Below are positions 21,333 to 62,778 of a DNA stretch of 64,000 bases, piece by piece. The notes below the pieces were generated by a model, which ran no database searches, was not told where the DNA came from, and saw only the letters and a program-made list of their open reading frames with translations. Position numbers and translations under genes: made by a program. The first letter of the stretch is position 1; each line of letters starts with the position of its first letter. The stretch covers positions 412,237 through 476,236 of the IMG/VR virus record IMGVR_UViG_3300032236_002285; one strand, given 5' to 3'.

Positions 21333-21587
21333 ATGACTGATCTAACAGACAATCAACTTGAAAAGCTTTATGCTATGTCTGAAATCCACTACAAATGGTT
21401 CCAGATATATTCTCCTGAGACTAAATATGAAGATGTTTTAAAGCTTAATCATATAAAGATGTTAAGTATAATGGAAGGTTGTTCTGATTGTTCAGAAGAT
21501 ATGTTAGATTTTATTTTTGATGCTATTATTAGAGATTATAAAGAAATGTTAAATGATTATTCAATTGGCTTAGACGATATTATCTAA
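21333..21587 (+). CDS. Hypothetical protein
   Basis: 84-aa ORF. Confidence 0.6.
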   Translation: MTDLTDNQLEKLYAMSEIHYKWFQIYSPETKYEDVLKLNHIKMLSIMEGCSDCSEDMLDFIFDAIIRDYKEMLNDYSIGLDDII

Positions 21588-21950
21588 GTTCTTTCTTCTG
21601 CGATACTTTTGTTTTGACTTTTCCACTTCATCTTCGTTGTTTCCGTACATATAGTTATAATAATAAAGAAGTGTTGCGTCTTGTAAGTTTTCTTTAATAC
21701 AATCATCACAAATAGCAATCACGAATTGATCACCATCATGTGTTGAACCATAACCAGCGTCAATGATATGAATTATACCATTATCAATCATTTCATTATT
21801 GACATTAACCAAACTACCATCTTCTCTTCTTTCTCTTTTCCAAATAACATCCTCTTCACTTTGAGGGGGTGAATCTTCAGTTGAGATTTTAGAACCCATT
21901 CTTGGTGTATAAGGAATTACATTATTTTTCTTACAACAGATGCAATACAT
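21570..21950 (-). CDS. Zinc-binding hypothetical protein, C-tag
   Basis: CICC...CDDC; ends RRKNLDNIV. Confidence 0.65.
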   Translation of the reverse strand: MYCICCKKNNVIPYTPRMGSKISTEDSPPQSEEDVIWKRERREDGSLVNVNNEMIDNGIIHIIDAGYGSTHDGDQFVIAICDDCIKENLQDATLLYYYNYMYGNNEDEVEKSKQKYRRRKNLDNIV

Positions 21951-22099
21951 TAGTTAAATATCTTTTTAATTTTTTTCATTCTTTTCTTTTCTCTACTTAA
22001 TGGTCTGTTATAAGTTATAATAGAAGATATTCTTGTTTCTAAATTAGGTAGAAACCTTATTTTAGCACCTGGCTTTAACTCAAAGAATTCTTTTTTCAT
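21950..22099 (-). CDS. 49-aa C-tag protein (not in ORF track)
   Basis: MKKEFFELKPG...REKKRMKKIKKIFN*; overlaps neighbours by TAATG/ATGA. Confidence 0.65.
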   Translation of the reverse strand: MKKEFFELKPGAKIRFLPNLETRISSIITYNRPLSREKKRMKKIKKIFN

Positions 22100-22281
22100 A
22101 TATCAAATATGTTTTTAATTTTTTTCATTCTTCTGCTTTGCTTAGAAGGAAACTTCATTGTCATAAAAGATGGATAAATAATTCTATCGTAGTTTTTAAT
22201 ACTATCTTGAATTTTACCCTTCTGTTCTTTTCTAAGTGATGCTAGTTCTTCTAACATCTTCTTCATTTGTTCTTCGTTCAT
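22096..22281 (-). CDS. Small C-tag protein
   Basis: Ends RMKKIKNIFDI. Confidence 0.65.
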   Translation of the reverse strand: MNEEQMKKMLEELASLRKEQKGKIQDSIKNYDRIIYPSFMTMKFPSKQSRRMKKIKNIFDI

Positions 22282-22421
22282 AGATTAAACAAGTTCTTTA
22301 TTTTCTCTTTTCTTTTTGTTCGTCTTGATGGTAGAATAGTTACTGAATGTGTTAAAGAGGATATACCACCTTGTAATCCACTTGGTAAAGTAAAAACAAA
22401 ATCAAAATTCTTTATATTCAT
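22278..22421 (-). CDS. 47-aa C-tag protein (not in ORF track)
   Basis: MNIKNFDFVF...RKEKIKNLFNL*; ATGA overlaps at both ends. Confidence 0.65.
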   Translation of the reverse strand: MNIKNFDFVFTLPSGLQGGISSLTHSVTILPSRRTKRKEKIKNLFNL

Positions 22422-23260
22422 TTCTCTGCTACTTTTCTAAAGTCAGTTAAGATAGTGTTTCTTAGTTCTCTGAACTCTTCATCTAATTCCTCCCAAGTCC
22501 ATCTTTTTCTTTTAATCTTATCCCAAATAAAGTTAGCACAAGAAAAATCTGTAATACGACCTGACGTTGCTATTTGAGTAGCAAACATAGGAATTCTCAA
22601 TGAGTGAAAAAGAGATTTAACTCCGGTGTGGTATTCGTCAGTTAGTTCTAATTTCTTTTTGCACTTGACCCAGCTATTAGAACTTATATGAGAAGTTGCG
22701 TGTCTGAGTTTAGCTAAGTTGATTTTGAAATTATCAAACTTGATAGTTTCTTTTAACTTAGCCCAATCTGGTGCCCAAATACATTCTAGATTGTTTATAC
22801 GATGCCATTCTAAATCAGCTTTGAACTTATCAGGAGTGTAAACGTGAATGTTGAATAAACCATTACGAATCTCAGTTGATTCAACAGAGTTGTTAGCGAT
22901 CATAATAATATCCCAATCAGAATCAGAGGTAGCTGTTCCGTATACCTGAGACCCGAAGATGTACACGTTAAAGACCCGACTTGGGTGTATCTTTGATGCT
23001 TTAATTATTGTTTCTAATGTTGGTATCATTATCTTATCTATTTTAATATTTCTTACTGCTGATGGATCTAAACTCTCTAAAATCCCCTCAATACAATCTT
23101 GACAAAGAATTGAAACTCCACCATCTAATGTGTGTATAGAAGCACACTTCACAACGTGAGAGTCACAACCATCACATATCTTATTATCATCAACAAACAT
23201 TAGAGATGCTTTAAGTACTTGTGGTCTTTCTGGAAACTTAGATAAGTGTATTTTTCTCAT
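22418..23260 (-). CDS. Zn-finger/C-tag module fused to DNA pol-beta-like nucleotidyltransferase
   Basis: CDGC..CQDC, internal RNIKIDKI, then YIFGSQVYGTATSDSDWDII (GS..YG....SDxD). Confidence 0.8.
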   Translation of the reverse strand: MRKIHLSKFPERPQVLKASLMFVDDNKICDGCDSHVVKCASIHTLDGGVSILCQDCIEGILESLDPSAVRNIKIDKIMIPTLETIIKASKIHPSRVFNVYIFGSQVYGTATSDSDWDIIMIANNSVESTEIRNGLFNIHVYTPDKFKADLEWHRINNLECIWAPDWAKLKETIKFDNFKINLAKLRHATSHISSNSWVKCKKKLELTDEYHTGVKSLFHSLRIPMFATQIATSGRITDFSCANFIWDKIKRKRWTWEELDEEFRELRNTILTDFRKVAEK

Positions 23261-23478
23261 ATTCCTAATTCTTTTAACTTGTCGTCTCTTAATTTACTAA
23301 GCAATTCATACTTACTACGAATGAATCTTGTTTCACCAATACAATTACCATTATCATCTTCTAAATCAAGACCTCTAATGTCATCATCACCTGTAATAGT
23401 GAACTGATGTCCTTTCTTATATACTTTACCGTTAAATTCAAAGTCCTCTAAAAAAACTACTCTGTCTCCAATTCTCAT
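23257..23478 (-). CDS. SH3-like small protein, C-tag
   Basis: IGDRVVF..KKGHQFTIT; ends RDDKLKELGI. Confidence 0.7.
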   Translation of the reverse strand: MRIGDRVVFLEDFEFNGKVYKKGHQFTITGDDDIRGLDLEDDNGNCIGETRFIRSKYELLSKLRDDKLKELGI

Positions 23479-23717
23479 TTTAATATTTTATTTATTTGTT
23501 GTTCTCTAAATTCTTCTAACGTCATAAAATGTTTAGCATCCATCTTCCTAAACTTACCATCATCACACTTGATAACATATGATGGTGCTACAGGTTTTAA
23601 TGTAACTGGATCATAAATAACAGGAGTCAATTCACACTCATAAAAGCTACCTGGCTTTACATAGTAAGCCATTTCATCAACTGGTGATATAGTATCTTTA
23701 AGATAGAGTGTAGCCAT
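23475..23717 (-). CDS. Small protein, C-tag
   Basis: Ends REQQINKILK; TATCTTTG 4 nt upstream of ATG. Confidence 0.7.
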   Translation of the reverse strand: MATLYLKDTISPVDEMAYYVKPGSFYECELTPVIYDPVTLKPVAPSYVIKCDDGKFRKMDAKHFMTLEEFREQQINKILK

Positions 23718-23721
23718 TTTA

Positions 23722-23729
23722 CAAAGATA
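23722..23729 (-). promoter_or_regulatory. Bacteroidota sigma70 -7 element
   Basis: TATCTTTG-TAAA-ATG. Confidence 0.65.
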
Positions 23730-23740
23730 GTTATTTTTAT

Positions 23741-23974
23741 TTAGATTCCTAATTCACTTAACTTTTTATCTCTATCCTCTTTAACTGAACAAGATTCACA
23801 TTTTGTAGGCTCTCCTCTGAATCCACCTTTATATAGGTCTAATTCTTTTTTACAAGATTCACAAAGCTCACCAATACCAATTGAAAATAATTCATCAGAA
23901 TCATATTTACCATATGACTTAGGTTCTTTCAAATCAAGATGTAAAATTGTTTTGATAAGATCTACAAATTTCAT
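23741..23974 (-). CDS. Zn-finger small protein, C-tag
   Basis: CESC..CESC; ends RDKKLSELGI. Confidence 0.7.
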   Translation of the reverse strand: MKFVDLIKTILHLDLKEPKSYGKYDSDELFSIGIGELCESCKKELDLYKGGFRGEPTKCESCSVKEDRDKKLSELGI

Positions 23975-24198
23975 ATACCTAATTCATTTAGTTTATCTTC
24001 TCTTAAATCTACTATATCAATACAATCTTCTGGTATTATAGCCCAACTAGTCAAACCATGTGACTTAATAACACGGTAATATTCATCTTTGTCATTAAGA
24101 CCAACCTCAAATACTTCACCCACTTTATCATGATACCAATATCTGTCTGTACTAGATTCTGAGTAATCACAAGAGCATTTTATAATTTTTACTTTCAT
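23971..24198 (-). CDS. SH3-like small protein, C-tag
   Basis: MKVKII..KVGEVFEV; ends REDKLNELGI. Confidence 0.7.
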   Translation of the reverse strand: MKVKIIKCSCDYSESSTDRYWYHDKVGEVFEVGLNDKDEYYRVIKSHGLTSWAIIPEDCIDIVDLREDKLNELGI

Positions 24199-24482
24199 AT
24201 TCCTAAATCATTTAGCTTAATATCTCTATCTAATTCAGTTGAGATATTTTTTAACTTCTTTGATAGAAACCACATTAAGCCAGAATCACCAAACTGATAT
24301 GGTTCTTCGGGCCAAGAGTCTCTATCTTTTGAGTTCATCTGTCTTGCTTCTTCGCACCATTCTTCTGGTATCAATTTATAGATTTCTTCATCCAAGTCAT
24401 TACAACCGTGATTATCAAATTCATCTTTAGCCATCATCAACATCTTTGATGATAACTCTAATAGCAATTTTATATCTTTCAT
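24195..24482 (-). CDS. Small protein, C-tag
   Basis: Ends RDIKLNDLGI. Confidence 0.7.
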   Translation of the reverse strand: MKDIKLLLELSSKMLMMAKDEFDNHGCNDLDEEIYKLIPEEWCEEARQMNSKDRDSWPEEPYQFGDSGLMWFLSKKLKNISTELDRDIKLNDLGI

Positions 24483-24706
24483 ATCCCTATGTGTTTAAGT
24501 TTCTTTTGTCTTAACAAGTTTAAGTATTCTGACTTTAATAAACAAAGAGTATGTCCATCCATTTGTCTATTTGGTACATCAAATGAAACTAAAATATCAT
24601 TCTCTCTTTGAGAGATAGTATGAATTTTAATATCCATTGGATTTTCTAAACCAATGTTCCATTTGTATAAACAAATGTCATATAACAACTCTTCATCTAA
24701 TATCAT
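24479..24706 (-). CDS. Small protein, C-tag
   Basis: Ends RQKKLKHIGI. Confidence 0.7.
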   Translation of the reverse strand: MILDEELLYDICLYKWNIGLENPMDIKIHTISQRENDILVSFDVPNRQMDGHTLCLLKSEYLNLLRQKKLKHIGI

Positions 24707-25065
24707 ATACCCAAACCATTTAACTTTTGATCTCTCTTATATAACAAAGAAACTTCAATGTTATTATCTTCTGGATAACTTAAAACATTTTGTAAGTAGT
24801 CATAAACTTCTTGAGTTCTACCTTCGTCTGATTCATATCCATAAAGATATCCACCTCTGAATATTCTACCATCAGATGGATCATCAATCTCACCTTGAGC
24901 AGTTAGTATCAATGATTCTATTTCACCTTCATCAATACCAAAAGATTTTAATTGATTAAGTAAATCAATCAAATCTTCCAATCTTTCTTTATAGTCCCAA
25001 CCCCAGTTGCCTCTAAGGTCTAATTGTAAGTGACCAATTGCGGTTTTCAATTCTTCTATATTCAT
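24703..25065 (-). CDS. Small protein, C-tag
   Basis: Ends RDQKLNGLGI. Confidence 0.7.
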   Translation of the reverse strand: MNIEELKTAIGHLQLDLRGNWGWDYKERLEDLIDLLNQLKSFGIDEGEIESLILTAQGEIDDPSDGRIFRGGYLYGYESDEGRTQEVYDYLQNVLSYPEDNNIEVSLLYKRDQKLNGLGI

Positions 25066-25277
25066 ATTCCTATTTTTTCTAAATTATCTATTCTTGTTTT
25101 TACTTTAACTGATATCCAATGTTCATCACCACAAAATTGAGATTCCGGATCAGTTATACTGGCTTCTGAGCCGTGTAAGTGACAAGCAAACTCAACACAC
25201 CAATTAGCTGATGTGTATAGTTCAGGTCTGCTTTTATCAATAAAAAACAAACAATTTTTACAACACTTTTCTCTCAT
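25062..25277 (-). CDS. Cys-rich small protein, C-tag
   Basis: CCKNC..C..C..C; ends RIDNLEKIGI. Confidence 0.7.
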   Translation of the reverse strand: MREKCCKNCLFFIDKSRPELYTSANWCVEFACHLHGSEASITDPESQFCGDEHWISVKVKTRIDNLEKIGI

Positions 25278-25528
25278 ATTCCTAAATCGGTTAAAGTGTT
25301 ATCTAATTTCAAATCTTTATTCCATTCTTCTAACTCATTTAAATAATATTCTTTGCTTACCCATTTAGCACCATTATAAACTGCCTTATCCATTCCATAC
25401 CAAACGGTTGCCATTGCTTTATCAAACTCAACATAAAGACCGTTGTGAGGTGTATCTATGCTTACGAGTATACCAAACCCATCTTCAGTTTTAACCTCTT
25501 GAAATATTCTTAAAAATGATGGTTTCAT
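25274..25528 (-). CDS. Small protein, degenerate C-tag
   Basis: Ends KLDNTLTDLGI. Confidence 0.7.
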   Translation of the reverse strand: MKPSFLRIFQEVKTEDGFGILVSIDTPHNGLYVEFDKAMATVWYGMDKAVYNGAKWVSKEYYLNELEEWNKDLKLDNTLTDLGI

Positions 25529-26352
25529 ATAGCAACTAAATCTTCGTATTTAAATTTTGTTTGTTTTTTCTTTTTATTAATGAACTTAACCTCATTTACC
25601 ACTAAATCACCTTTTTCTATCTCAGATTTAATTTTATCAAATGTTTCTTTTTTTGGTTCAAATAATTTAAGTGAGTCCCAAATGCTACCAGAATGTATTG
25701 AAGCATTATAAACTTCTATCAAACCATCTTTATAGTCATATGAAAACCAAACACCTTCTACCCAAACAGATCTACCTCTTTGAATATTAAATGCGATATC
25801 AAGTGCAACTTCTCTCCAGTAAGATTTAGTGAGAGCTTCACAAGCTGGTTTTGACCAATCTAATATACCTCTAGCATCCTTGACATTCTCAGGAAAACTA
25901 ACTTCATATTTTACTCCTTCAATTCCATCCACACTAAATCTTCTCTCTTCTGAATAGTGACCCGCGTATTTGAGTTTATCTTTTTGGTGAACTACTGGTA
26001 TAGTCCATTCATCAATATTGCTAAATTCTGGATTTCTTTCTAAAAATGTTTTTAGCTTAATACTCACATTTGATGAGGTTTTGTAATGATCATACCCATT
26101 AACGCCTGTTATAAATTTAGGCGATGTATCTGATTTAGGATTAAAAAAGAAACCAACATTTATTGTAAGAACATCCCAGTTGTTAGCATTGAAACTTAAT
26201 CCGTAGATATCACGACTACACAAAGGCCTGCTGTCAATAGAAGGTGGACAAATACCAATTAAATCCTTAGTATATCCTGGTGAGTTTAGAATTTCTTGTC
26301 TAATGACTTCTAATACCGGATGGTCTTTTTTTATTGTATAAATTTTTTTCAT
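25525..26352 (-). CDS. Hypothetical protein
   Basis: 275-aa ORF, ATGA-coupled, no C-tag. Confidence 0.7.
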   Translation of the reverse strand: MKKIYTIKKDHPVLEVIRQEILNSPGYTKDLIGICPPSIDSRPLCSRDIYGLSFNANNWDVLTINVGFFFNPKSDTSPKFITGVNGYDHYKTSSNVSIKLKTFLERNPEFSNIDEWTIPVVHQKDKLKYAGHYSEERRFSVDGIEGVKYEVSFPENVKDARGILDWSKPACEALTKSYWREVALDIAFNIQRGRSVWVEGVWFSYDYKDGLIEVYNASIHSGSIWDSLKLFEPKKETFDKIKSEIEKGDLVVNEVKFINKKKKQTKFKYEDLVAI

Positions 26353-26864
26353 ATTCCTAATTTATTTAATACTTTACTTCTAATGTTTGCTTTAGTGTCC
26401 CAATATTTCTTTGTGTCTAAGTAATACAACTCAATATCACCTTTTGATTGGTCTAAAAATCTAATCTTCCAATCTGCTGATGTTTCTTTAACATCAATAA
26501 TAACAAGTTCAGTACCTTTTGAAATCTTCCACCAGTTTGGCTTCTGACTCGGATCGCTGTGATTGATATATTTCTTAAATATACCATCATAATAGAAATC
26601 TTTTTTAACTACAACTATCTCACCAACTTGAGGAACTTGATAGCCACTTCTATCAAAGTCAACCATTCCATCATAAATAAGAATTCGATAGAGACCTAAG
26701 ACACAAAGTATCAATATCATTGACACACCGAAGAATAGATTGCCAGTTTGTATGTTAATCATACTAAAGGCAACAATCGAAACCATGAAAAGAAACTTAA
26801 ATACTTCATTTCTGTCTAACCAACGATTCAATCTAAAAATACTATTCTTTAACATGCTAACCAT
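26349..26864 (-). CDS. Two-TM membrane protein + SH3-like domain, C-tag
   Basis: Two hydrophobic helices; VGEIVVVK; ends RSKVLNKLGI. Confidence 0.7.
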   Translation of the reverse strand: MVSMLKNSIFRLNRWLDRNEVFKFLFMVSIVAFSMINIQTGNLFFGVSMILILCVLGLYRILIYDGMVDFDRSGYQVPQVGEIVVVKKDFYYDGIFKKYINHSDPSQKPNWWKISKGTELVIIDVKETSADWKIRFLDQSKGDIELYYLDTKKYWDTKANIRSKVLNKLGI

Positions 26865-27190
26865 ATACTTTCTTTTGGTAATTTATCTAAAACTTCATCA
26901 ATTTTAATTTGTCTTTTATAAGCAATCATCTTACTCAAAGTATCTCTGAGAAAGGTTAATGTTTTTTGCTTTCTCGTTTCACTTCTGAATTTAGTATTCT
27001 CGGTTTGTCTGATATTTGATTTCATTTGTTCAATATTAATCTTCATATCAAAATTATAATCATTAGCATTCTGCCAATAGAGAATTTCATCATTTTTTAA
27101 GATGATGAAATCCTTCTTTTCATTGAAAGGACATTTTAATTCCTCAATGATTTGATACCACTCTCCGTTATTACTTGACATTATTCTCAT
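26849..27190 (-). CDS. Hypothetical protein, near-terminal C-tag
   Basis: RQIKIDEVL near C-terminus. Confidence 0.6.
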   Translation of the reverse strand: MRIMSSNNGEWYQIIEELKCPFNEKKDFIILKNDEILYWQNANDYNFDMKINIEQMKSNIRQTENTKFRSETRKQKTLTFLRDTLSKMIAYKRQIKIDEVLDKLPKESIWLAC

Positions 27191-28143
27191 GACCCAAATA
27201 AACTATTTAATAAATCATCACGATGTGACTGAACATCTTCAAAACAAGAATACTGAAACCAATTTGAACGATTGTCGTCACCATAAATTAAAACATTTAC
27301 ATAACCATTAGAAATGCTTGTACTACGAACTTCATAATATTGGTCTTTAGTAAGACTTTTCTGACCATAATTATAAACATCATTCAAACACTTTAATCTT
27401 GTTCCTTCAGGAACTTTCATCAACTTAGATATCTTTTCAGAAATTGAACTAATGATATAATCAGAGTTTAATTTTCTAAAATCAATTTTACTATCATCAA
27501 CAATCTGAGCCAAACTACTCAATAACTTACGAGTTACATCAATCTCACGCTTAGGTACACCAGAGAAGTCTAACTCTTTATCTATATACCAACGAACTGA
27601 TGATTCAATTATTGATTGATTTTTGAAATAAGAATAATGTTCTTTACGATCATCATAACTATCATAGACATCAATGTTATTTTCCATGATATAGTTAATC
27701 ATTGGGACAATACAATACTTGAAACCCTCAATATGTTCGTGACTTCTGCGACCAGAAGTTCTACGACCTCTACTAGTTACACTGGGTTTGGAAACCCAAC
27801 GACCATTTAGATAACGATCAAAAGTAGCACCATCATTTAGTATCTCATTGAACTGACGTTGAGTTCTATTAAGTAAAAACTTCTTAAATCTTTCATTGTT
27901 AGTTTGTTCAACTAACATTGGTTTTAATCTACGCCAAGTCATACCTTTCATAACAGGATTAAATCCTGCGTTGAAACAATTAGTTAAAAAAGAACCAAAA
28001 CTAGCAAAGTCACCAAGACCTAACTTGTTCATTGTACCATAACTAACTTGACCCTGCTCATATTCAGATATGATAGGGAATATCTCTTTTGCTTCTTTGT
28101 AAGTTTCTAAGTTCTTTTTAATTAGATCGTAGTTTAACTTCAT
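27187..28143 (-). CDS. Hypothetical protein with C-terminal SH3-like module, C-tag
   Basis: GTRLKCLND..LTKDQYYEVR; ends RDDLLNSLFGS. Confidence 0.7.
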   Translation of the reverse strand: MKLNYDLIKKNLETYKEAKEIFPIISEYEQGQVSYGTMNKLGLGDFASFGSFLTNCFNAGFNPVMKGMTWRRLKPMLVEQTNNERFKKFLLNRTQRQFNEILNDGATFDRYLNGRWVSKPSVTSRGRRTSGRRSHEHIEGFKYCIVPMINYIMENNIDVYDSYDDRKEHYSYFKNQSIIESSVRWYIDKELDFSGVPKREIDVTRKLLSSLAQIVDDSKIDFRKLNSDYIISSISEKISKLMKVPEGTRLKCLNDVYNYGQKSLTKDQYYEVRSTSISNGYVNVLIYGDDNRSNWFQYSCFEDVQSHRDDLLNSLFGS

Positions 28144-28439
28144 AGTTTAGATATGATTTTAGAAACACTTTTGTTGATCTCATCAAAAGTAGGAACACCT
28201 TCACCGATGTAAACAAAAGCTATATTCTTGTTATTGATTGTTGATTTTCTAACAGATTCTTTCATTAATCTTTTGATTCTATTTCTATCAACAGCTCTTT
28301 TGAACTTCTTAGATGAAACAGCAAAAAGAAAAGAAGTAGATTCAGATTCTAAAACTTTAGCCAATACGATACCATTTGAAACGGACTTACCCCTTTCAAA
28401 AAGTGCATCAATTGATATCTTATTTTTTAGAATATTCAT
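28140..28439 (-). CDS. rnpA: Ribonuclease P protein component
   Basis: IDALFERGK, FAVSSKKFKRAVDRNRIKRLMKE (RNR motif). Confidence 0.88.
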   Translation of the reverse strand: MNILKNKISIDALFERGKSVSNGIVLAKVLESESTSFLFAVSSKKFKRAVDRNRIKRLMKESVRKSTINNKNIAFVYIGEGVPTFDEINKSVSKIISKL

Positions 28440-28443
28440 TAAG

Positions 28444-28474
28444 CAAAGATAAGAAATATTTTTGATAAAACAAA
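28444..28474 (-). promoter_or_regulatory. Bacteroidota sigma70 promoter (-33 TTTG / -7 TATCTTTG)
   Basis: TTTG-N19-TATCTTTG-CTTA-ATG(rnpA). Confidence 0.75.
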
Positions 28475-28501
28475 AAACCCACCAATTACTTGATGGGTTT
28501 T
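28472..28501 (-). terminator. Terminator after clpP
   Basis: aaaaccca..tgggtttt hairpin. Confidence 0.6.
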
Positions 28502-28517
28502 AATTCTAAAAAAAGAA

Positions 28518-29667: not shown

Positions 29668-29669
29668 TT

Positions 29670-55665: not shown

Positions 55666-55882
55666 TTAGAATAGAATCTATCTTTGTTTCTCGCCATTTG
55701 TCTAATGGGGTTAGTATCCTTTCAATTGTGTTTAAGTGTAGTGTTGTTACCCGTTTATTTTCGGTGGTGAATATATCACGGTATGCACCGCCTAGTGATA
55801 GTGGTGTTTTTATTATATAGATGTTACCTTTTTGGAAGGTGATATCGTGTAGAGTAAAGGTTTTTATACAGATGTATTTCAT
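55661..55882 (-). CDS. SH3-like small protein, C-tag
   Basis: MKYICIK..FQKGNIYI; ends RETKIDSILK. Confidence 0.7.
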   Translation of the reverse strand: MKYICIKTFTLHDITFQKGNIYIIKTPLSLGGAYRDIFTTENKRVTTLHLNTIERILTPLDKWRETKIDSILK

Positions 55883-56353: not shown

Positions 56354-56692
56354 TTATAATGATTCAATCTTAGCAATTACTTTATCTCTACGTTTGATAG
56401 CTGATTCGTTTTTATCACCGGTAGAGTTGTTAGACCAGAATGTATTGAAGTCAAATCTTACATAGAAGTTGTAGTTATCATTACCTGAGATACCACCTGA
56501 ACGAGCATTATAAGATTTAGGGAATTTGGCTTTATAAGCTTCAGCTTCGTCTTTTGTTTCAAAGTAAGCGGTAATACTTCTTACTTCATTAGCATCTCCA
56601 ATATCATTTACAGATGTTAATAAAGGTAGGGCGTAGTAGCCACTGGTATCTGTAGGGTTTTTATAATCTAGACGGTGAACAAGTAGTTTCAT
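56354..56692 (-). CDS. Hypothetical protein
   Basis: 112 aa; promoter TTTG-N19-TATCTTTG at 56709-56739. Confidence 0.7.
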   Translation of the reverse strand: MKLLVHRLDYKNPTDTSGYYALPLLTSVNDIGDANEVRSITAYFETKDEAEAYKAKFPKSYNARSGGISGNDNYNFYVRFDFNTFWSNNSTGDKNESAIKRRDKVIAKIESL

Positions 56693-56748
56693 AGTGTAGT
56701 GATTTATACAAAGATATGAAATATTACTAACAAAACAAAATTGTGAGG

Positions 56749-57306
56749 TTAAATGTTATTATATCCCTCAACGGATTCTACTGGTGGTTTTCCAATCTCT
56801 TGTAGGAAATCGTTTAATCTATCGATGATTATCTCATCATCATGTATAATATCATAATCATTAAACAATTCTATATAATCTTTATTATAGAATAATAGCC
56901 AAATGTCACTAACTGGGTTATTATAAAGGTAAATATCACCAACAACCACCTTTGGAAAATGTTCTAACGATGTTAATTTATTATTTTTACAACTAAAATA
57001 ACCACCAACGGATTCAGGACAATCTTCCAAAGATGTTAATTGATTATAAGAACAATTAAAATTACCACCAACGTATTTAGGAGCACCTTCCAAAGATATT
57101 AGTTTATTATCAATACAATTAAAATCACCAGTAACCTTTCTAAACTTTAATGGTAGCTTTGCTAATCCTTTATTTTCTAAATCAACATTACCATCAACAT
57201 CAATCGAACCATCTTCGTTAATAGTATAATCTTCTATACCACAAATTTTACATATATCATCAATGTCATTTTCAATAAATGATTCATATAGTTTTAAGTA
57301 TTTCAT
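56749..57306 (-). CDS. LRR protein paralog A with CTS-like leader
   Basis: Probable start ATG 57306 (MKYLKLYESFIE); about 22-aa repeats VGGxFxCxxNxLTSLExxP. Confidence 0.85.
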   Translation of the reverse strand: MKYLKLYESFIENDIDDICKICGIEDYTINEDGSIDVDGNVDLENKGLAKLPLKFRKVTGDFNCIDNKLISLEGAPKYVGGNFNCSYNQLTSLEDCPESVGGYFSCKNNKLTSLEHFPKVVVGDIYLYNNPVSDIWLLFYNKDYIELFNDYDIIHDDEIIIDRLNDFLQEIGKPPVESVEGYNNI

Positions 57307-57310
57307 TATC

Positions 57311-57922
57311 TTATATATTATTATATCCTTCAACGGATTTCACTGGTGGCTTACCAATCTCTTGTAAGAACTCATTTAATCTATCAATGATAATGCTATT
57401 ACCACGAATAACATCGTAATCGTTGAGTAATTCAATCTTATCTTTATCCTTGAATAATTGCCAAATATTATCAACCGGATTATCATAAAGGTAAATATCA
57501 CCACCAACCTGTGGGAAATGTTCTAAAGATCTTAATTGATTATTACAACAATTAAAATAACCACTAACTGATCTAGGAGAACCAACCAAACTAGTTAATT
57601 GATTATGACTACAATCAAAACGATCACCTACCGATTCAGGACAACCTTGCAAACTAGTTAATCTATTGAAAGAGCAATAAAAACTACCACCAACATATTG
57701 AGGAGAACCCTCTAATGATGTTAATTGATTATTAGAACAATAAAAAGTACCAGTAACCTTACCGAACTTTAGTGGTAGCTTTTTTAATCCTTTATTATTT
57801 AAATTAACATTACCATCGACATCAATAGATCCATCCGAGTTTATAGTATAGTTTTTTATACCATACTTTTTACAGATAGCATCAATTTCATTAAATGATT
57901 CATATAGTTTTAAGTATTTCAC
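57311..57922 (-). CDS. LRR protein paralog B with CTS-like leader
   Basis: GTG start, MKYLKLYESFNE; one more repeat than paralog A; near-identical caps. Confidence 0.85.
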   Translation of the reverse strand: MKYLKLYESFNEIDAICKKYGIKNYTINSDGSIDVDGNVNLNNKGLKKLPLKFGKVTGTFYCSNNQLTSLEGSPQYVGGSFYCSFNRLTSLQGCPESVGDRFDCSHNQLTSLVGSPRSVSGYFNCCNNQLRSLEHFPQVGGDIYLYDNPVDNIWQLFKDKDKIELLNDYDVIRGNSIIIDRLNEFLQEIGKPPVKSVEGYNNI

Positions 57923-57949
57923 AAGGTATATATTAAATGTCTTTTATAT

Positions 57950-58045
57950 AAAAAAAGACAACCTGCCCTTGATTTCTTCAGACATTTTATAGTCCGCCCT
58001 TCGTACTTTGATATCCAGTCGGCAACCTGTTTATCGTTTCTGACA
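57950..58045 (-). ncRNA. Candidate small RNA
   Basis: TATCTTTG (58049-58056) followed by about 95 GC-richer nt ending in a weak hairpin plus U-tract; only mini-ORFs under 20 aa. Confidence 0.3.
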
Positions 58046-58071
58046 ATACAAAGATAAGGAGGATTACTTAA

Positions 58072-58347
58072 TTAAACAAGGGATTCTAATAATTTATTTC
58101 TTTTATATACTTTATAATCTTCTAATGGCATCCAATGTGTTGGTTGAAAAGGAAATTGAGGATGATTGTCGGTAAAGAAGTTATCTGAATCTTGTGGGTC
58201 TTGAAAGTTCCATTTATATTCACTACTCATAAGATACCACATAATAGCTTCTTGGTTACCATCAGTAGTCATAACATCATATCCTTCTGGTGGATAGTTG
58301 CTATCTGGTTGGTTATTTAAATCTTTATTATTAAAGGCTATCCACAT
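58072..58347 (-). CDS. Small protein (DUF551-like PTHWMPL tail), C-tag
   Basis: MWI..N..P..V...PTHWMPL; ends RNKLLESLV. Confidence 0.65.
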   Translation of the reverse strand: MWIAFNNKDLNNQPDSNYPPEGYDVMTTDGNQEAIMWYLMSSEYKWNFQDPQDSDNFFTDNHPQFPFQPTHWMPLEDYKVYKRNKLLESLV

Positions 58348-58349
58348 TG

Positions 58350-58613
58350 TTATATTAGTTCTGATAATTTAATACCTCTTAAAATTGATTTCCATTTACT
58401 TACTTCTGAGTTATCTATAATGCTATCTGCTTTATAGATAATAACTTTATCATCAACTATTTCATAGATAACTTTTTTAGTATGATTTAAATGTGACATT
58501 GGTTTACCAATTAACATAATCATATTATCACCTATAAGTTTAACATCTTGTATCTCAGTGGTGTGATTAGGATAGTGTAGTTTAATAAGGTCTATAATTT
58601 CTTGTTTATCCAT
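58350..58613 (-). CDS. Small protein, C-tag
   Basis: Ends RGIKLSELI; TATCTTTG 4 nt upstream of ATG. Confidence 0.7.
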   Translation of the reverse strand: MDKQEIIDLIKLHYPNHTTEIQDVKLIGDNMIMLIGKPMSHLNHTKKVIYEIVDDKVIIYKADSIIDNSEVSKWKSILRGIKLSELI

Positions 58614-58661
58614 TAGGCAAAGATAATATTTAGCAATTAATTATTTTTATAATGTATAGGT

Positions 58662-59099: not shown

Positions 59100-59819
59100 T
59101 TAGCTTAATATTTGATTTAACTTCTCATCACGATATTGTGATATGTCTGGTTGCCAATCATATAGATAAGAATGTATTCTAAATCTTTTATCTACATATT
59201 TAGTCCATTGTGGTCCATTATAACTAAAAGGACCACCCAACTCTGTTTGTTGAAAAGCAGTTACTGGTAGATAATAACCAACCTCAGTAAATAACTTTTC
59301 TAACATATCTACGAATTGATTCAAAGCTAATTGTTCTTCTACATAATCATTATAATTGTCTTCTAAGTGCCATTGAAGCATATTATCTCTATCAATGGCG
59401 GCTTGAACACCCTGATTAACCATTTCTTTCCTAACATCACCAAGAATATTAGAGTTACCAAATGGTCGTTTGAATTCCATAGTGATGTAAGTGTCATCTT
59501 CATCCCAATCTAAGTAAAGTTGTTTTAATAAACCAATCTGCCAATCCTCTACATTATACTTTTGTATAAAGTCAGGTTTTAATTGACACGATATGGTGAT
59601 AAACTGCATCGCAGGATAAATGTCATTTAATTCTTTTTTGGTTAAATACTCATTATCTTCTAAACGCCATTGAAGCATATTATCATAGTAACCACTCTCA
59701 TCTGAGTGGTGTGCTTTCAATGACTTAATCCTTTGTATCATATCATCGGTAATATGATATGCTCGTGGTATATTTTTTGATACCCACTTACCTGAATAAA
59801 AGAATTCTGATGTGTACAT
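59100..59819 (-). CDS. Hypothetical protein with internal duplication, C-tag
   Basis: DNMLQWRLEDN / DNMLQWHLEDN; ends RDEKLNQILS. Confidence 0.7.
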   Translation of the reverse strand: MYTSEFFYSGKWVSKNIPRAYHITDDMIQRIKSLKAHHSDESGYYDNMLQWRLEDNEYLTKKELNDIYPAMQFITISCQLKPDFIQKYNVEDWQIGLLKQLYLDWDEDDTYITMEFKRPFGNSNILGDVRKEMVNQGVQAAIDRDNMLQWHLEDNYNDYVEEQLALNQFVDMLEKLFTEVGYYLPVTAFQQTELGGPFSYNGPQWTKYVDKRFRIHSYLYDWQPDISQYRDEKLNQILS

Positions 59820-60061
59820 TATTTAATTTCTAATACGTTAAATACGTTATCAATCTTAGCTTCTCTGATATCTGCTAACTCTACATAATAGATAATAGCA
59901 GAGTATGATTCAATTGATCGATGAGGTCCAGAAGAAACACCTATTGAGTATTCTGTTTTGATAATCTGTCTGATATCAATTTTTTGTAGAAAGTCATTAA
60001 CCGCAACTTCTAATGTATGAGTATGGTCCTCATTAAATATCTTTACTTTAGCATTTATCAT
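59819..60061 (-). CDS. Small protein, C-tag
   Basis: REAKIDNVF near end. Confidence 0.65.
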   Translation of the reverse strand: MINAKVKIFNEDHTHTLEVAVNDFLQKIDIRQIIKTEYSIGVSSGPHRSIESYSAIIYYVELADIREAKIDNVFNVLEIK

Positions 60062-60315
60062 ATACCTAGTTCTTTTAATTTCTTATCTCTTTCTTGTTCT
60101 ACATTCAGCGCAACATTACGCCAATCCGTTTTTTCATCACCAGAATGTGCCACTCTAACTTGATTAATAAAACACCTTGGACAATATCTAAATTCAGTAT
60201 TTACTGGAAAGGTATATGATGGTATTACTCTATGTGTTAAATTAACAGGTGATGTTATATGGGGAACATCTTCTTTATAGTAGTTCCACTTATGACCAAA
60301 CAACTTACACTTCAT
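60058..60315 (-). CDS. DUF1660-like small protein, C-tag
   Basis: MKCKLFGHKW..CPRC; ends RDKKLKELGI. Confidence 0.7.
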   Translation of the reverse strand: MKCKLFGHKWNYYKEDVPHITSPVNLTHRVIPSYTFPVNTEFRYCPRCFINQVRVAHSGDEKTDWRNVALNVEQERDKKLKELGI

Positions 60316-60550
60316 TTGCTTCTGTTTGTTTTATCAACTCTAATATAATAGATTTATTATCTTGACAGGTTTGAATTAGTGAATGAAGTAATGGTATACC
60401 ACCATCAGTAGCAAGTATCTTTTGAAATTTATCTTCATTTGACAATATGTCAGTTAAGGTCCAAAATGGACTTAGTTTATTTCTAAGCTTTGCTTGTGGG
60501 GTTTCTGGTACCCAATTACCGTTAATATCTCTGGTGCCGCTATCTTGCAT
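60305..60550 (-). CDS. Hypothetical protein
   Basis: 81-aa ORF. Confidence 0.6.
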   Translation of the reverse strand: MQDSGTRDINGNWVPETPQAKLRNKLSPFWTLTDILSNEDKFQKILATDGGIPLLHSLIQTCQDNKSIILELIKQTEANEV

Positions 60551-60553
60551 ATA

Positions 60554-60775
60554 TTACTTTAATTGTATCATAGAAACAGACTCTACACCTCTGTAAATAA
60601 GAATTGTAGTTGAGTCATTTAATTGTACTTTATATAAACCGTGATCTATTTCATCCATTACTTTTTCTACTTTAGTATTAGATGAAGGTGCGGGTGAGTT
60701 GTTTTCAGTTGTTACCACTGGTGTGTTACAAGCAAAAAGACATAGTGTGATTAGAATGATAAGTATATTTTTCAT
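60554..60775 (-). CDS. Small lipoprotein
   Basis: MKNILIILITLCLFA-C lipobox. Confidence 0.7.
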   Translation of the reverse strand: MKNILIILITLCLFACNTPVVTTENNSPAPSSNTKVEKVMDEIDHGLYKVQLNDSTTILIYRGVESVSMIQLK

Positions 60776-60835
60776 AATGTAAATATAAGATAATTAATTG
60801 AATAAACAAAATAGATATAAAATATAAAAGTTTAT

Positions 60836-61132
60836 ATGATTATATATAAAGGTGTTTCTTATAACTCTACTAAATTAATTTGCACTAGTAAGCTATCTTT
60901 AATGTTAAGCTACCCTAATTATAACAAATTAGAAATAGGTAAGATATATGATGGTTTCTTAGTTTATGTTTATGGTAATGGTACATCTGGTTGTGTTGAT
61001 AAACCAAATGGAGATAATACTCAACCATGTGGTTGGTATATAGATGGAGTTAGTAGTTCTATAAATGAGAACTTTGGTCTTGAGTTTTTTAAGCCACTTA
61101 GAGATTACAACTTATCATTGATAAATTTATAA
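60836..61132 (+). CDS. SH3-like small protein, degenerate C-tag
   Basis: KLIC..LEIGKIYD; ends RDYNLSLINL. Confidence 0.6.
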   Translation: MIIYKGVSYNSTKLICTSKLSLMLSYPNYNKLEIGKIYDGFLVYVYGNGTSGCVDKPNGDNTQPCGWYIDGVSSSINENFGLEFFKPLRDYNLSLINL

Positions 61133-61354
61133 TATTCCTAACTTCTTTAGTTTCTTATCACGAGTATATTCAATTGATTCAAATCTTTTATGATGATAAA
61201 AACGTTTATTGCCATAATCATTAATAATAGCAAATGAATGGTCGCTAATAGAAACATTATCACCTAACACTTCATAAGCTTTACCAATAGTTAAATTGAC
61301 ATGTTCATCTTGAGCACCATCAACTTCACCATTATTAATACAAACTACTTTCAT
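61127..61354 (-). CDS. SH3-like (DUF6501-like) protein, C-tag
   Basis: MKVVCIN..LTIGKAYEV..IINDYG; ends RDKKLKKLGIL. Confidence 0.7.
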   Translation of the reverse strand: MKVVCINNGEVDGAQDEHVNLTIGKAYEVLGDNVSISDHSFAIINDYGNKRFYHHKRFESIEYTRDKKLKKLGIL

Positions 61355-61626
61355 ATTCCTAACTGATCTAATTTTTGATTTCTATATTCTTCTAAGGTAA
61401 TAAAATTATTAGGGTCAACATCCATAGTTGTTTCTAATTTATCATGATGGATAATAAGATACGACTTACCATGACCCCTTCCTGTGCATTTATCATAAAC
61501 TTCAAAGATATCACCTTTATAATAAGCTCTTTCAATATAAACACCTTTATAATAATAACCTTTCTTAGGTATCGCCCGAAATGCCTTTAGGGGCAGCGGC
61601 GCGTCATTAATAGCAATCACTTTCAT
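61351..61626 (-). CDS. SH3-like small protein, C-tag
   Basis: MKVIAIN..KGDIFEV; ends RNQKLDQLGI. Confidence 0.7.
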   Translation of the reverse strand: MKVIAINDAPLPLKAFRAIPKKGYYYKGVYIERAYYKGDIFEVYDKCTGRGHGKSYLIIHHDKLETTMDVDPNNFITLEEYRNQKLDQLGI

Positions 61627-61841
61627 AGAATCTTATCTAATTGTCTCCTTCGCCATTCATCTAATTTAAGGAATGTGCTTTTATAGTAATACTCTTTGTG
61701 ACCTCTATCATTTATTATCCACCAGTTGTAATTATCAATACCCGGTAGGCCGCATCCTGGCAGGACATCATATATCTTACCATAGGTTAATTCATATTGT
61801 AAACCTTGTGACCTGTATTTCTTAATACAAACTACTTTCAC
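61623..61841 (-). CDS. SH3-like (DUF6501-like) protein, C-tag
   Basis: MKVVCIK..LTYGKIYDV..IINDRG; ends RRRQLDKIL. Confidence 0.7.
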   Translation of the reverse strand: MKVVCIKKYRSQGLQYELTYGKIYDVLPGCGLPGIDNYNWWIINDRGHKEYYYKSTFLKLDEWRRRQLDKIL

Positions 61842-62059
61842 TTCAATATCTTTTTAATCTTCTCTTCTCTGTGGCAAGCTTCACAAATTAACTTACTATC
61901 ACCAATAGTTAAATCACCTGTTGGTCTCAATATAACATGAATTATAATATTTACAATGGTAACAAATCTACTAGGTTTCTTAACAAAGTATTTATCTTTT
62001 ACTAAATCAAATTTAGATTGACAATCGGGACAAGTTCTTTCAGTTATTCTCTTACTCAT
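61838..62059 (-). CDS. Zn-ribbon protein, C-tag
   Basis: CPDC..CEAC; ends REEKIKKILK. Confidence 0.7.
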   Translation of the reverse strand: MSKRITERTCPDCQSKFDLVKDKYFVKKPSRFVTIVNIIIHVILRPTGDLTIGDSKLICEACHREEKIKKILK

Positions 62060-62184
62060 ATGCCTAACTCATTTAACTTTTCTTCTCTAAGAATAGATGT
62101 TATATCATTAATACATCTAATTGGTTTTAATTCACCATCAACTAAAGATATGTAATAACTATTATCTTTAACAGGATAATTCAT
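62056..62184 (-). CDS. 42-aa C-tag protein (not in ORF track)
   Basis: MNYPVKDNSYYISLVDGELKPIRCINDITSILREEKLNELGI*. Confidence 0.7.
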   Translation of the reverse strand: MNYPVKDNSYYISLVDGELKPIRCINDITSILREEKLNELGI

Positions 62185-62428
62185 TCTTTTTCCAGCTTCT
62201 TAGAGTATTATTACCAATCATTAAATTCAATTTATTCAATTGAATTTCATTGTCTAATCTAAATTTTATACCATAAACATTTTTCAAAAAGCTCATACCG
62301 AAATCATTTTCTAATAAAGTTTCAATAGGTGTACAATCAAATTCTTTTTTTACATTAGCAATAATGTTATTGTAAGAATTTATAAAATCTTCTTTAGATT
62401 GAAATTTAGATTTATAAATAAAATTCAT
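62168..62428 (-). CDS. Hypothetical protein
   Basis: 86-aa ORF. Confidence 0.55.
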   Translation of the reverse strand: MNFIYKSKFQSKEDFINSYNNIIANVKKEFDCTPIETLLENDFGMSFLKNVYGIKFRLDNEIQLNKLNLMIGNNTLRSWKKNELSC

Positions 62429-62474
62429 TTTAAATATATCATAATTAATGTGTAAAGTTGTAAATATTTATACC

Positions 62475-62501
62475 TACAAAATTCCGCATCGTTTTTCTGT
62501 A
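62475..62501 (+). repeat. 27-bp imperfect palindrome, copy 5
   Basis: tacaaaatt-ccgcatcgt-ttttctgta. Confidence 0.75.
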
Positions 62502-62505
62502 GTTT

Positions 62506-62778
62506 TTAAATGCCTAACGCTTCGAGTTTATCTTGTCTAATAGATTGTGTATCTAATATCATAGTGCCACTATAATGACCTGTTACCATATTACGAAGTT
62601 GTTCATATGAATAGTTAATAATACGACCATTTTCCCATTCAATAGCAACTTCATACTCAAACGGAGCATTAACAACTTTCCCATGTGTATTTAATTTAGA
62701 GAGTGTATTTTCTTTATCAACCATTTCCTCTATCCAAATAACTTTATCACCTATATTTAGTTTCATAGAATCAATCAT
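62506..62778 (-). CDS. SH3/KOW-like small protein, C-tag
   Basis: LNIGDKVIW; ends RQDKLEALGI. Confidence 0.7.
   Translation of the reverse strand: MIDSMKLNIGDKVIWIEEMVDKENTLSKLNTHGKVVNAPFEYEVAIEWENGRIINYSYEQLRNMVTGHYSGTMILDTQSIRQDKLEALGI

Follow-up and report, generated by a model that had tools for sequence, protein, structure and literature searches.

About half of the small accessory proteins of an uncultured giant Bacteroidota phage, and of dozens of other uncultured AT-rich phages, end in the same ten-residue peptide (R-D-x-K-L/I-x-x-L/I-G/L-I/K), which is predicted to form a helix. Selection acts on this peptide rather than on the underlying DNA. No family library or paper that we searched describes it. 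We infer that the tail is more likely than not a portable docking helix for one common cytoplasmic partner, although no partner was identified. Our leading, but unproven, guess is that it serves as a turnover handle for Clp-type proteolysis.

A shared tail at the C-termini of small phage proteins

We analysed a 64,000-nucleotide stretch of the phage genome (hereafter, the window). The strict motif R-[DENQKG]-x-K-[LI]-x-x-[LI] lies within 7 residues of the stop in 37 ATG-started ORFs of at least 30 aa, whereas whole-sequence shuffles and within-protein shuffles both give a mean of 0.08 and a maximum of 2. The motif never occurs in the first 14 residues of a protein, and only 6 of 43 occurrences lie more than 7 residues from a C-terminus. 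Under a looser pattern, supplemented with ten degenerate tails read by eye, 50 ORFs between 21,950 and 62,778 are tagged. Of these, 21 end in [LI]-G-[IL], one of them with an extra L. Two are on the + strand and the rest on the - strand. These counts confirm the observation behind the sequence-only reading, which had proposed a common C-terminal helix on more than 50 small proteins.

Tagged genes are concentrated in one part of the window and among small proteins. Between 21.5 and 64 kb, the tag is carried by 40 of 66 ORFs of 130 aa or less, by 10 of 24 ORFs of 131-320 aa, and by 0 of 4 larger ones. Between 1 and 21.5 kb only 1 of 26 ORFs carries it, and weakly. Core enzymes identified by Pfam lack the tag, as the sequence-only reading had claimed, namely DHFR (1460-1939), guanylate kinase (6930-7475), Dam (19553-20359) and ClpP (28518-29276). 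Bacteroidota-type -7 boxes (TAnnTTTG) lie 5-21 nt upstream of the first ATG of most tagged arrays, which are headed by host-type (Bacteroidota sigma-A) promoters. The tagged loci are as follows.

21570-23717 (-): array 1, behind a TATCTTTG -7 box ending 5 nt before the ATG at 23717. Tagged ORFs are 23475-23717 (degenerate, ...REQQINKILK), 23257-23478 (...RDDKLKELGI), and three tiny ORFs at 22278-22421, 22096-22281 and 21950-22099 with the variant ...K-K-I-K-x-I/L-F-N/D. The nucleotidyltransferase at 22418-23260 is untagged.
23741-28439 (-): array 2, behind a -7 box upstream of 28439. Nine tagged ORFs, mostly joined by ATGA overlaps: 27187-28143 and 26349-26864 (degenerate tails; the second has two membrane segments), 25274-25528, 25062-25277, 24703-25065, 24479-24706, 24195-24482, 23971-24198 and 23741-23974. 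The last ends ...LGI with ATC TAA and no overlapping start.
28518-31892 (-): array 3, behind a -7 box upstream of 31892. Tagged ORFs are 31656-31892, 30149-30601 (N-terminal membrane anchor) and 29670-30146. The last gene of the same-strand run is an untagged ClpP (28518-29276) with a recognisable Ser and His context.
33345-33746 (-): a single Cys-rich ORF with a degenerate tail (...KRDITIKSIIND).
42478-45672 (-): array 4, behind a -7 box upstream of 45672. An untagged 228-aa P-loop ATPase (44986-45672) is followed by five tagged ORFs: 44645-44986, 44237-44587, 43876-44244, 43278-43892 and 42478-43281.
47922-48194 (-): a tagged Cys-rich ORF (...RDKKIDNILK, TAA), followed, by eye, by a G+C-rich hairpin and T run and then a convergent gene; a tag at an operon end with nothing to couple to.
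49134-53067 (-): array 5, behind a -7 box upstream of 53067. Eleven of its twelve ORFs are tagged: 52774, 52400 (membrane anchor), 52113 (ACP-like, Ser replaced by Asp at the attachment site), 51531, 51155, 50886, 50500, 49961, 49626, 49352 and 49134. A 40-aa ORF at 51994-52116, nested inside 51531-52043, also carries a tail.
53764-54406 (+): the two + strand tagged ORFs, 53764-54024 and 54017-54406. In both, the helix is followed by a few extra residues, and the next gene's ATG falls 32 nt (53764-54024) or 29 nt (54017-54406) after the first base of the Arg codon.
55289-55882 (-): two tagged ORFs, 55661-55882 (...RETKIDSILK) and 55289-55534 (DUF1660-like zinc ribbon, ...RDKKLKSLGI; the next gene is on the opposite strand).
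56354-58613 (-): three ORFs, 58350-58613 (tagged), 58072-58347 and 56354-56692 (degenerate tails). The first and the last have their own -7 boxes.
59100-62778 (-): array 6. Tagged ORFs are 62506-62778 (ATT TAA, 77-nt gap downstream), 62056-62184 (42 aa), 61838-62059, 61351-61626, 61127-61354, 60058-60315 (DUF1660-like), 59819-60061 (Cse60 domain plus tail) and 59100-59819. Untagged ORFs in the same run are 62168-62428, 60554-60775 and 60305-60550.

Selection on the peptide rather than the DNA

Conservation of the tag is at the amino-acid level. Arg is encoded by AGA 30 times, CGT 8 times and CGA twice, in background proportions, while Leu uses TTA, CTA, CTT, CTC and TTG, and Gly uses all four codons. 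Pairwise synonymous identity among the window's tags equals the expectation from genome codon usage at positions 1-9 (z from -1.2 to 2.6). It exceeds expectation only at position 10 (z = 4.0), where Ile ATA is needed for the ATGA stop/start overlap.

This pattern bears on the possibility that the tail has a translational role, in which the nascent peptide in the ribosome tunnel, or its A-rich mRNA, promotes termination and re-initiation at the overlapping ATGA in a host that does not use Shine-Dalgarno sites. The peptide would then appear conserved because the overlap fixes the reading frame. In keeping with this, 33 of 50 tagged genes overlap the next start, against 11 of 44 untagged genes, and the last codons are enriched for A at third positions, GGA and ATA. 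In seven tags with extra residues the next ATG still starts 29-32 nt after the Arg codon. However, fifteen good tags have no overlapping downstream start, and these score the same as coupled tags (means of 19.1 and 19.5 bits, p = 0.82). Further, synonymous codons vary freely at positions 1-9, including the AGA/CGT switch, and the first genes of operons start 5-21 nt after their -7 box with no tag-like leader. In a T4-like contig, a tag-coding stretch with no ATG-started body does sit between a -7 box and the first gene of an array, but such orphan tags are rare (2-3 in about 180). A translational role, one of four options raised by the sequence-only reading, is therefore disfavoured and seems unlikely.

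It is less likely still that the conserved gene ends are recombination linkers, that is, DNA-level homology patches that allow small genes to be shuffled between co-infecting phages, with the peptide being incidental. Such a role has been proposed for the promoter-stem-loop cassettes (PeSL) of T4-type phages, which are likewise repeated elements at the boundaries of small early genes in hyperplastic regions. Tagged genes are indeed exchanged between phage lineages, one group of loci holds gene fragments in these regions, and orphan tails exist. Yet PeSLs are non-coding DNA and RNA elements, whereas here the conservation lies in the encoded peptide, and there is no excess nucleotide identity beyond what the peptide and codon usage predict. 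Amino-acid classes are kept through multi-base changes, and the tail stays nearly invariant in families whose bodies have diverged to 30-50% identity. The codon analysis largely refutes this explanation.

A portable module shared among AT-rich phages

The tag sits on bodies that are mostly unrelated, including SH3-like, zinc ribbon, Cse60, ACP-like and membrane-anchored proteins. The sequence-only reading had called the bodies unrelated, which is somewhat overstated. BLAST gives 48 clusters for 50 bodies, but a profile search joins 7 window proteins into one SH3-like family, two proteins are DUF1660-like paralogues, and the three tiny ORFs at 21950-22421 share a variant tail. Known Pfam domains end before the tail, with DUF1660 covering residues 2-71 of 85, Cse60 covering 5-59 of 80, and PP-binding covering 21-69 of 96. 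The folds also differ, with an SH3/Tudor-like body in one family and a zinc-ribbon sheet in another.

The tag is not peculiar to this phage. It recurs, at several copies per 10 kb, in at least 40 other viral contigs of GC 22-38%, including a T4-like 185-kb phage and 385-508-kb phages, and tagged gene families are shared between unrelated phage types. In contrast, it is absent as an ORF end from the 185,579 prokaryotic genomes searched and from two cultured Bacteroidota phages. It comes in at least three subtypes: ...L-G-I, ...I-L-K/N and ...I-K-x-I-F-N. In 103 of 154 pooled tags exactly two residues follow position 8, and GI is followed directly by the stop in 70 of 73 cases, although these figures are partly biased by how the loci were fetched.

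Possession of the tag is a stable family trait. A body-only search of 1.84 billion representative proteins found 18 relatives, all with the tail, and all 120 listed Cse60-like homologues also have it. Clusters in the fetched loci are either nearly all tagged or all untagged.

Possible functions of the tail

AlphaFold2 predicts a helix over the tag in two families, spanning residues 72-82 with pLDDT above 90 in the zinc-ribbon family and residues 61-71 with pLDDT of about 75 in the SH3-like family. The module is 10-11 residues long, [hydrophobic]-R-D/E-x-K-L/I-x-x-L/I-(G-I | L-K/N). In the main subtype the predicted helix ends at Gly, and Ile is the last residue. Arg1, Lys4, Leu5 and Leu8 fall on one face. 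The tag also sits on the predicted cytoplasmic end of three membrane-anchored proteins, as judged from charge distribution, and has only three hydrophobic residues, with Arg and Lys in the middle of that face. These properties disfavour a membrane or export signal, another option of the sequence-only reading.

We infer, with moderate confidence, that one face of this helix docks all these proteins onto a single abundant cytoplasmic partner. Because the tag occurs in a megaphage, a T4-like phage and smaller contigs of the same AT-rich pool, the partner is more likely to be host-encoded or part of the shared accessory gene pool than a lineage-specific phage protein. This argument for a host partner is weakened, however, because whole tagged genes are exchanged between these phages.

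We tentatively suggest that the tag is a hard-wired turnover handle, whose helix and free non-polar end would be recognised by an AAA+ protease or its adaptor, giving a whole class of early proteins a common short lifetime. Here, 'early' is inferred only from promoter type. The tag is extreme C-terminal, subtype A has a non-polar end, and enzymes and large proteins lack the tag. The phage also adds a ClpP gene, which lies in the same-strand run as tagged genes behind one -7 box, and the relative LR745206.1 carries two true ClpP genes. Close parallels are the ssrA tag and the ClpX 'C-motif' class typified by the MuA C-terminus, which are peptides of about 10 residues at the extreme C-terminus that act in the cytoplasm independently of the body. 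In subtype A, basic residues are similarly combined with a non-polar last residue, and phage early regulators such as those of lambda and Mu are classic substrates of such tags. Yet the sequence is unlike ssrA or MuA, and each tag is encoded in its own gene on dozens of proteins rather than added by tmRNA. Classic degrons are unstructured, whereas this tail is a confidently predicted helix that may pack on its own body. Subtypes B and C end in Lys, Asn or Asp, or in a few extra residues, and the strict conservation of Arg, Asp and Lys suggests a specific interface rather than a generic non-polar tail. Another analogy is offered by the PRANC/F-box-like C-terminal domains of poxvirus ankyrin proteins, in which a virus gives many different target-binding proteins one common C-terminal module that plugs into the host degradation machinery. 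PRANC, however, is a folded domain of about 40-50 residues on one repeat family, not a decapeptide on unrelated folds.

It is just as possible that docking is non-proteolytic, with the helix tethering accessory proteins to an abundant machine or scaffold, such as a chaperone (DnaK or GroEL), the ribosome, RNA polymerase, or a small phage protein that travels with the arrays. This would concentrate, fold or time these proteins without degrading them. All the evidence for a common docking face also applies here, and the helix looks structured rather than degron-like. The T4-like tag-bearing contig encodes a GrpE homologue 7 kb from its tagged array, and the three conserved subtypes could match paralogous sites. 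On the other hand, more than 50 different proteins would compete for one site, which needs a very abundant partner. No repeat-type peptide receptor (TPR, PDZ, ankyrin) was found among the window's proteins, and no untagged protein is shared by all tag-bearing loci, although only 5-20 kb was sampled per phage. Known hub-binding motifs, such as the beta-clamp-binding motif, the PIP box and the SSB C-terminal tail, also place one short terminal peptide on many unrelated proteins to be read by one abundant hub. The present consensus does not fit Q-L-[SD]-L-F or Q-x-x-[LIM]-x-x-[FY]-[FY], has no aromatic residues, and is carried by orphan accessory proteins rather than replication or repair enzymes. 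The MIT-interacting motifs of ESCRT-III proteins, bound by the Vps4 MIT domain, are also short C-terminal amphipathic helices with mixed Leu and Arg/Lys residues on one face, read by the N-domain of an AAA+ enzyme. That system is eukaryotic and archaeal, there is no sequence match, and no MIT-like domain was found here.

A purely intrinsic role appears doubtful. In this scenario the tail would be a capping helix that packs on its own small domain, or pairs with the tails of other copies, to stabilise or oligomerise very small proteins without an external partner. The pLDDT above 90 in the zinc-ribbon family suggests a fixed position relative to the body, SH3-like barrels with a C-terminal helix are a common arrangement, and the L-x-x-L-G-hydrophobic ending is a textbook helix C-cap. 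The only profile hit among solved structures is a coiled-coil segment of a SNARE protein, although that hit is at chance level. However, the same Arg, Asp and Lys are kept on all-beta, all-alpha (ACP-like), Cse60 and membrane-anchored bodies, which offer no common packing surface, and canonical Cse60, ACP and DUF1660 domains are complete without the tail. A 10-residue helix is too short for a stable bundle, and pLDDT is only about 75 in the SH3-like family.

Finally, the tail is unlikely to load proteins into the capsid for ejection or to mark them for a secretion route. Encapsulin cargo-loading peptides and the T4 capsid-targeting sequence do direct unrelated proteins to one place, an HK97-fold shell, by means of a short terminal peptide. 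The T4 signal, however, is N-terminal and is cleaved off. Here, the tagged genes sit in arrays behind host-type promoters, away from recognisable structural genes in the window, and about half of all small ORFs would have to be cargo. Three tagged proteins are membrane-anchored. The tail has no resemblance to the type IX secretion C-terminal domain, which Pfam does detect on another window protein. Nonetheless, in LR745206.1 one tagged 210-aa protein lies beside the second ClpP gene, near a baseplate-spike gene.

Occurrence and conservation of the C-terminal tag

The window is part of a 476-kb IMG/VR viral contig, and loci L001, L014 and L048, which derive from that contig, reproduce the window's own ORFs. 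It has 29.8% G+C and is densely coding under the standard bacterial code, with 120 non-overlapping ORFs covering 94% of the sequence and ending in TAA (81), TGA (33) or TAG (6). This coding density under code 11, together with in-frame stops that follow the tag stop within a few codons, leads us to reject an alternative genetic code or read-through into polyproteins. Its only GenBank relative is the unannotated 634,780-bp uncultured phage LR745206.1, at about 70-74% identity over short stretches. The host is a member of the Bacteroidota, on three grounds. TAnnTTTG -7 boxes end 5-21 nt before the first ATG of many operons, one window protein carries a type IX secretion sorting domain, and the relative encodes a SusC-type TonB-dependent receptor. 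The corresponding features are:

Window 23717-23740, 28439-28460, 31892-31915, 34914-34935, 42168-42190, 53067-53090 and 58613-58635: -7 boxes (consensus about TATCTTTG) ending only 5-7 nt before the first ATG of their operons
Window 63374-64000: untagged ORF running off the window end, with a type IX secretion C-terminal sorting domain
L040 (a locus from LR745206.1) 28454-31087: 877-aa SusC-like TonB-dependent receptor (CarboxypepD_reg plus Plug domains)

Transcripts from the listed -7 boxes should be leaderless or nearly so, which would be an unusual way of starting phage operons in a host without Shine-Dalgarno use. The protein at 63374-64000 is probably exported by the host's Bacteroidota-specific system.

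The sequence-only reading had described a common C-terminal helix on more than 50 unrelated small phage proteins, and the observation holds. The strict motif R-[DENQKG]-x-K-[LI]-x-x-[LI] lies within 7 residues of the stop in 37 ORFs, whereas shuffled sequence and shuffled proteins both give 0.08, and none occurs at an N-terminus. A looser pattern plus ten degenerate tails gives 50 tagged ORFs between 21,950 and 62,778, of which 21 end in [LI]-G-[IL]. Between 21.5 and 64 kb, the tag is present on 40 of 66 ORFs of 130 aa or less, on 10 of 24 ORFs of 131-320 aa, and on none of 4 larger ones, while it is almost absent from 1-21.5 kb. DHFR, guanylate kinase, Dam, ClpP, a tyrosinase, a lytic transglycosylase and the large orphan proteins lack it. 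Chance or composition is rejected, both by the shuffles and by two cultured Bacteroidota phages that have 0 tags in 136 ORFs.

Selection acts on the peptide. The invariant Arg is encoded by AGA (30), CGT (8) and CGA (2), close to the background proportions, and Leu and Gly use most of their codons. When codons for the same peptides were redrawn from the window's own codon usage, the observed pairwise synonymous identity was no higher than expected at positions 1-9. Only the final Ile is biased (ATA in 14 of 16 tags, z = 4), the A being the first base of the next gene's ATG in the ATATGA overlap. In a pooled set, the last three codons also prefer A at the third base, although that set is biased by the search pattern. 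There is thus a weak DNA-level constraint at the very end of the tag, laid over strong peptide-level conservation.

A DNA-level role, whether as a PeSL-like cassette, a recombination site or a translation-initiation leader, is disfavoured by this codon test. Further, only 2-3 body-less copies exist among about 180, and operon-first genes have no such leader. One body-less copy, in the T4-like contig from which locus L037 was taken (L037 9690-9762; same sequence in locus L038 2288-2389), encodes ...E-R-D-E-K-L-N-E-L-G-I followed by a stop overlapping the next ATG, and lies directly after a -7 box with no ATG-started body. It could be a relic of a deleted gene or a mini-ORF leader. A second body-less copy is at 6153-6212 of locus L009.

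Anatomy, carriers and distribution

Over 154 non-identical tags, the consensus is a hydrophobic residue often at -1, then R, D/E, x, K, L/I, N/K, E/K/D/Q, L/I, followed by G-I (subtype A) or L-K/N/S (subtype B). Subtype C, K-K-I-K-x-I/L-F-N/D on ORFs of 43-61 aa, recurs in the window and elsewhere. Exactly two residues follow position 8 in 103 of 154 tags, and in subtype A the G-I is followed by the stop in 70 of 73 cases, whereas subtypes B and C end in K, N or D or in extra residues. Where more residues follow, the next gene's ATG still begins 29-32 nt after the Arg codon, so the extra residues lie in the overlap with the next gene and look unconstrained. AlphaFold2 predicts a helix over the tag in two unrelated families, at residues 72-82 of 85 with pLDDT above 90 and at residues 61-71 of 75 with pLDDT about 75, with the final G-I non-helical. 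We infer from the consensus that R1, K4, L5 and L8 share one face of this helix, and that L-x-x-L-G-hydrophobic forms a standard helix C-cap. Three carriers have N-terminal membrane segments, and their flanking charges suggest that the tagged end is in the cytoplasm.

The tail matches no described family in the libraries searched. When the 24-residue tails were scanned alone at E up to 10, no recurrent family appeared, nor did any SAP, HeH or Rho_N family. For full proteins, the only hits among Pfam, PHROGs and NCBIfam are to body domains that end before the tail. A profile of the tails compared with PDB chains gave best hits at E = 0.1-1 (a glutamyl-tRNA reductase end and a synaptobrevin coiled-coil segment), which is chance level, and a Foldseek search with the zinc-ribbon model found nothing. 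The tag also does not fit the beta-clamp-binding motif (Q-L-[SD]-L-F) or the PIP box (Q-x-x-[LIM]-x-x-[FY]-[FY]), since the 154 tags show invariant R and K, no Q at the key position and almost no aromatic residues.

The carriers are mostly orphans of several different folds. BLAST links only two pairs among 50 bodies. Pfam recognises DUF1660 (two proteins), Cse60, an ACP-like protein and zinc ribbons, and in each case the domain is complete before the tail begins. The ACP-like protein (52113-52403) is probably not a carrier protein, as Asp appears to replace the phosphopantetheine-attachment Ser (D-D-L-D in place of the D-S-L-D of E. coli ACP). A profile built without the tail joins seven window proteins and 29 from other phages into one family. 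The AlphaFold2 model of one member, 61127-61354, matches SH3 and Tudor domains with Foldseek probability 0.9-0.99 and TM-score about 0.5 over about 60 residues. Sixty larger tagged proteins from other phages have no Pfam match at all.

The tag is widespread among uncultured AT-rich phages. A codon-level pattern for subtype A found 35 stretches in IMG/VR, and a subtype B pattern found 18 more. Setting aside the window's own contig, these represent about 40 contigs of 4.5-508 kb, all with 22-38% G+C, and most loci carry further tags that the pattern did not select, up to 15 in 15 kb. One carrier is a T4-like 185-kb contig with gp32, gp13 and ribonucleotide reductase, which has an array of seven tagged small genes. 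This contig also encodes a GrpE homologue (L037 17854-18318, from precomputed Pfam), so it may manipulate the host DnaK cycle. The first 200 kb of LR745206.1 hold 31 strict tags, mostly subtype B. Tagged gene families are shared between the megaphages and the T4-like phage.

In contrast, the same pattern found a single, non-ORF match in 185,579 prokaryotic genomes, and a G+C-rich codon version found nothing in IMG/VR. No cultured phage in GenBank gave a convincing hit. A 39-nt tag query hit only two uncultured huge-phage records above noise, and a tblastn search with a tagged protein found only distant tail-less DUF1660 genes of Lactococcus phages.

Possession of the tag is a stable trait. A search with only the body of 60058-60315 against 1.84 billion representative proteins found 18 relatives of 30-72% identity, all of which end in the tag. 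In this family, the tail is as invariant as the zinc ligands, while the middle varies freely. All 120 listed homologues of the Cse60-like protein end in R-D-A-K-I-D/E-N-V-L-E-I-K or a near variant, and gene clusters in the fetched loci are either almost all tagged or all untagged.

Possible functions of the tag

Several functions are disfavoured by this evidence. If the tag were a ribosome arrest or re-initiation peptide, its function would be tied to the stop codon and the downstream start. However, fifteen good tags have no overlapping downstream start, yet they score the same as 21 coupled ones (p = 0.82), and zero to seven residues follow the helix. One of these tags is followed, by eye, by a hairpin and T run before a convergent gene. 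Membrane targeting of the MinD or FtsA type would call for a hydrophobic face flanked, not interrupted, by basic residues, whereas on the helical wheel R1 and K4 lie inside the L5/L8 face. Three carriers already have membrane segments, which also argues against such targeting. Export is further disfavoured by the absence of any secretion-domain match, Pfam detecting the type IX domain on the untagged protein at 63374-64000 but on none of the 50 tagged proteins.

What remains is a peptide that works in the finished protein, in the cytoplasm, independently of the body. This would be a docking element for a common partner or, less likely, a self-contained structural helix. Because the tag crosses phage lineages within one AT-rich, apparently Bacteroidota-infecting pool, we think that a host partner is more likely than a lineage-specific phage one, although the exchange of whole tagged genes weakens this argument. 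Among the phage proteins near the arrays, two small P-loop ATPases were considered as a possible hub:

Window 17242-18087: classic-type AAA protein, whose nearest solved relatives are proteasomal Rpt3 at E about 1e-3; it ends in ...K-E-F-G-L and shows, by eye, no pore-loop motif
Window 44986-45672: 228-aa orphan heading a tagged array, 72% identical to a truncated copy in loci L004 and L030

The second recurs only as a truncated fragment in other loci, and no untagged protein is shared across all lineages in the 5-20-kb samples.

Among partners, our tentative choice is Clp-type proteolysis, for which there is no direct evidence, and a non-proteolytic hub is about equally likely. The choice rests on the extreme C-terminal position of the tag and the non-polar end of subtype A, and on the restriction of the tag to small accessory proteins in host-promoter arrays. 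A true ClpP lies inside one such gene run, the relative has two ClpP genes, and the unstable early proteins of lambda and Mu provide a precedent. Against it stand the structured helix and the polar ends of subtypes B and C. Docking of L-G-I on ClpP by mimicry of the ClpX/ClpA loop is attractive, but half of the tags lack the Gly, so it cannot be the general explanation. No tmRNA that might carry a similar tag was found in the window or in 220 kb of relatives. The ClpP genes are:

Window 28518-29276; L040 26119-26859; L041 25556-26221: full ClpP of the phage, with a recognisable Ser and His context, and the ClpP genes of the 634-kb relative

The relative has this ClpP (84% identity) plus a second true ClpP (41% identity), which could form a two-subunit phage ClpP.

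We speculate that the tag represents a previously unrecognised proteome-marking system of Bacteroidota phages, a possibility that we rate as somewhat less likely than not. A ten-residue C-terminal address label, in three subtypes, would be carried by a large share of accessory proteins across unrelated phage lineages and read by a single host or shared-pool receptor. One interaction would then control the lifetime, location or activity of a whole class of takeover proteins. Shared terminal peptides read by one hub are already known. A label carried by half of a phage's small proteins, and shared across phage lineages, is not one that we could find described in the family libraries, solved structures and papers that could be searched.

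Most small phage genes are orphans with no handle for study, yet here roughly half of them in one phage share one conserved decapeptide, as do thousands of metagenomic relatives. The tag also gives a simple sequence marker for accessory genes and for a host-linked phage gene pool that spans T4-like phages to 500-kb megaphages. If it is a degradation or docking label, or if its receptor is a host protease or chaperone, it would be a ready-made portable tag for protein control in Bacteroidota.

Rearranged and untagged genes

The tagged arrays show signs of frequent rearrangement. Fragments of a 205-aa gene and of the P-loop ATPase lie scattered among tagged genes, next to a LAGLIDADG-type ORF in related loci (L004 3435-4542, L030 4474-5581 and L029 364-552). 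Two further window proteins are of note:

Window 6472-6933: untagged 153-aa protein with a DnaJ-type CXXCXGXG zinc-finger region
Window 34978-36435: 485-aa protein with a tyrosinase central domain (E = 1e-28), unusual for a phage
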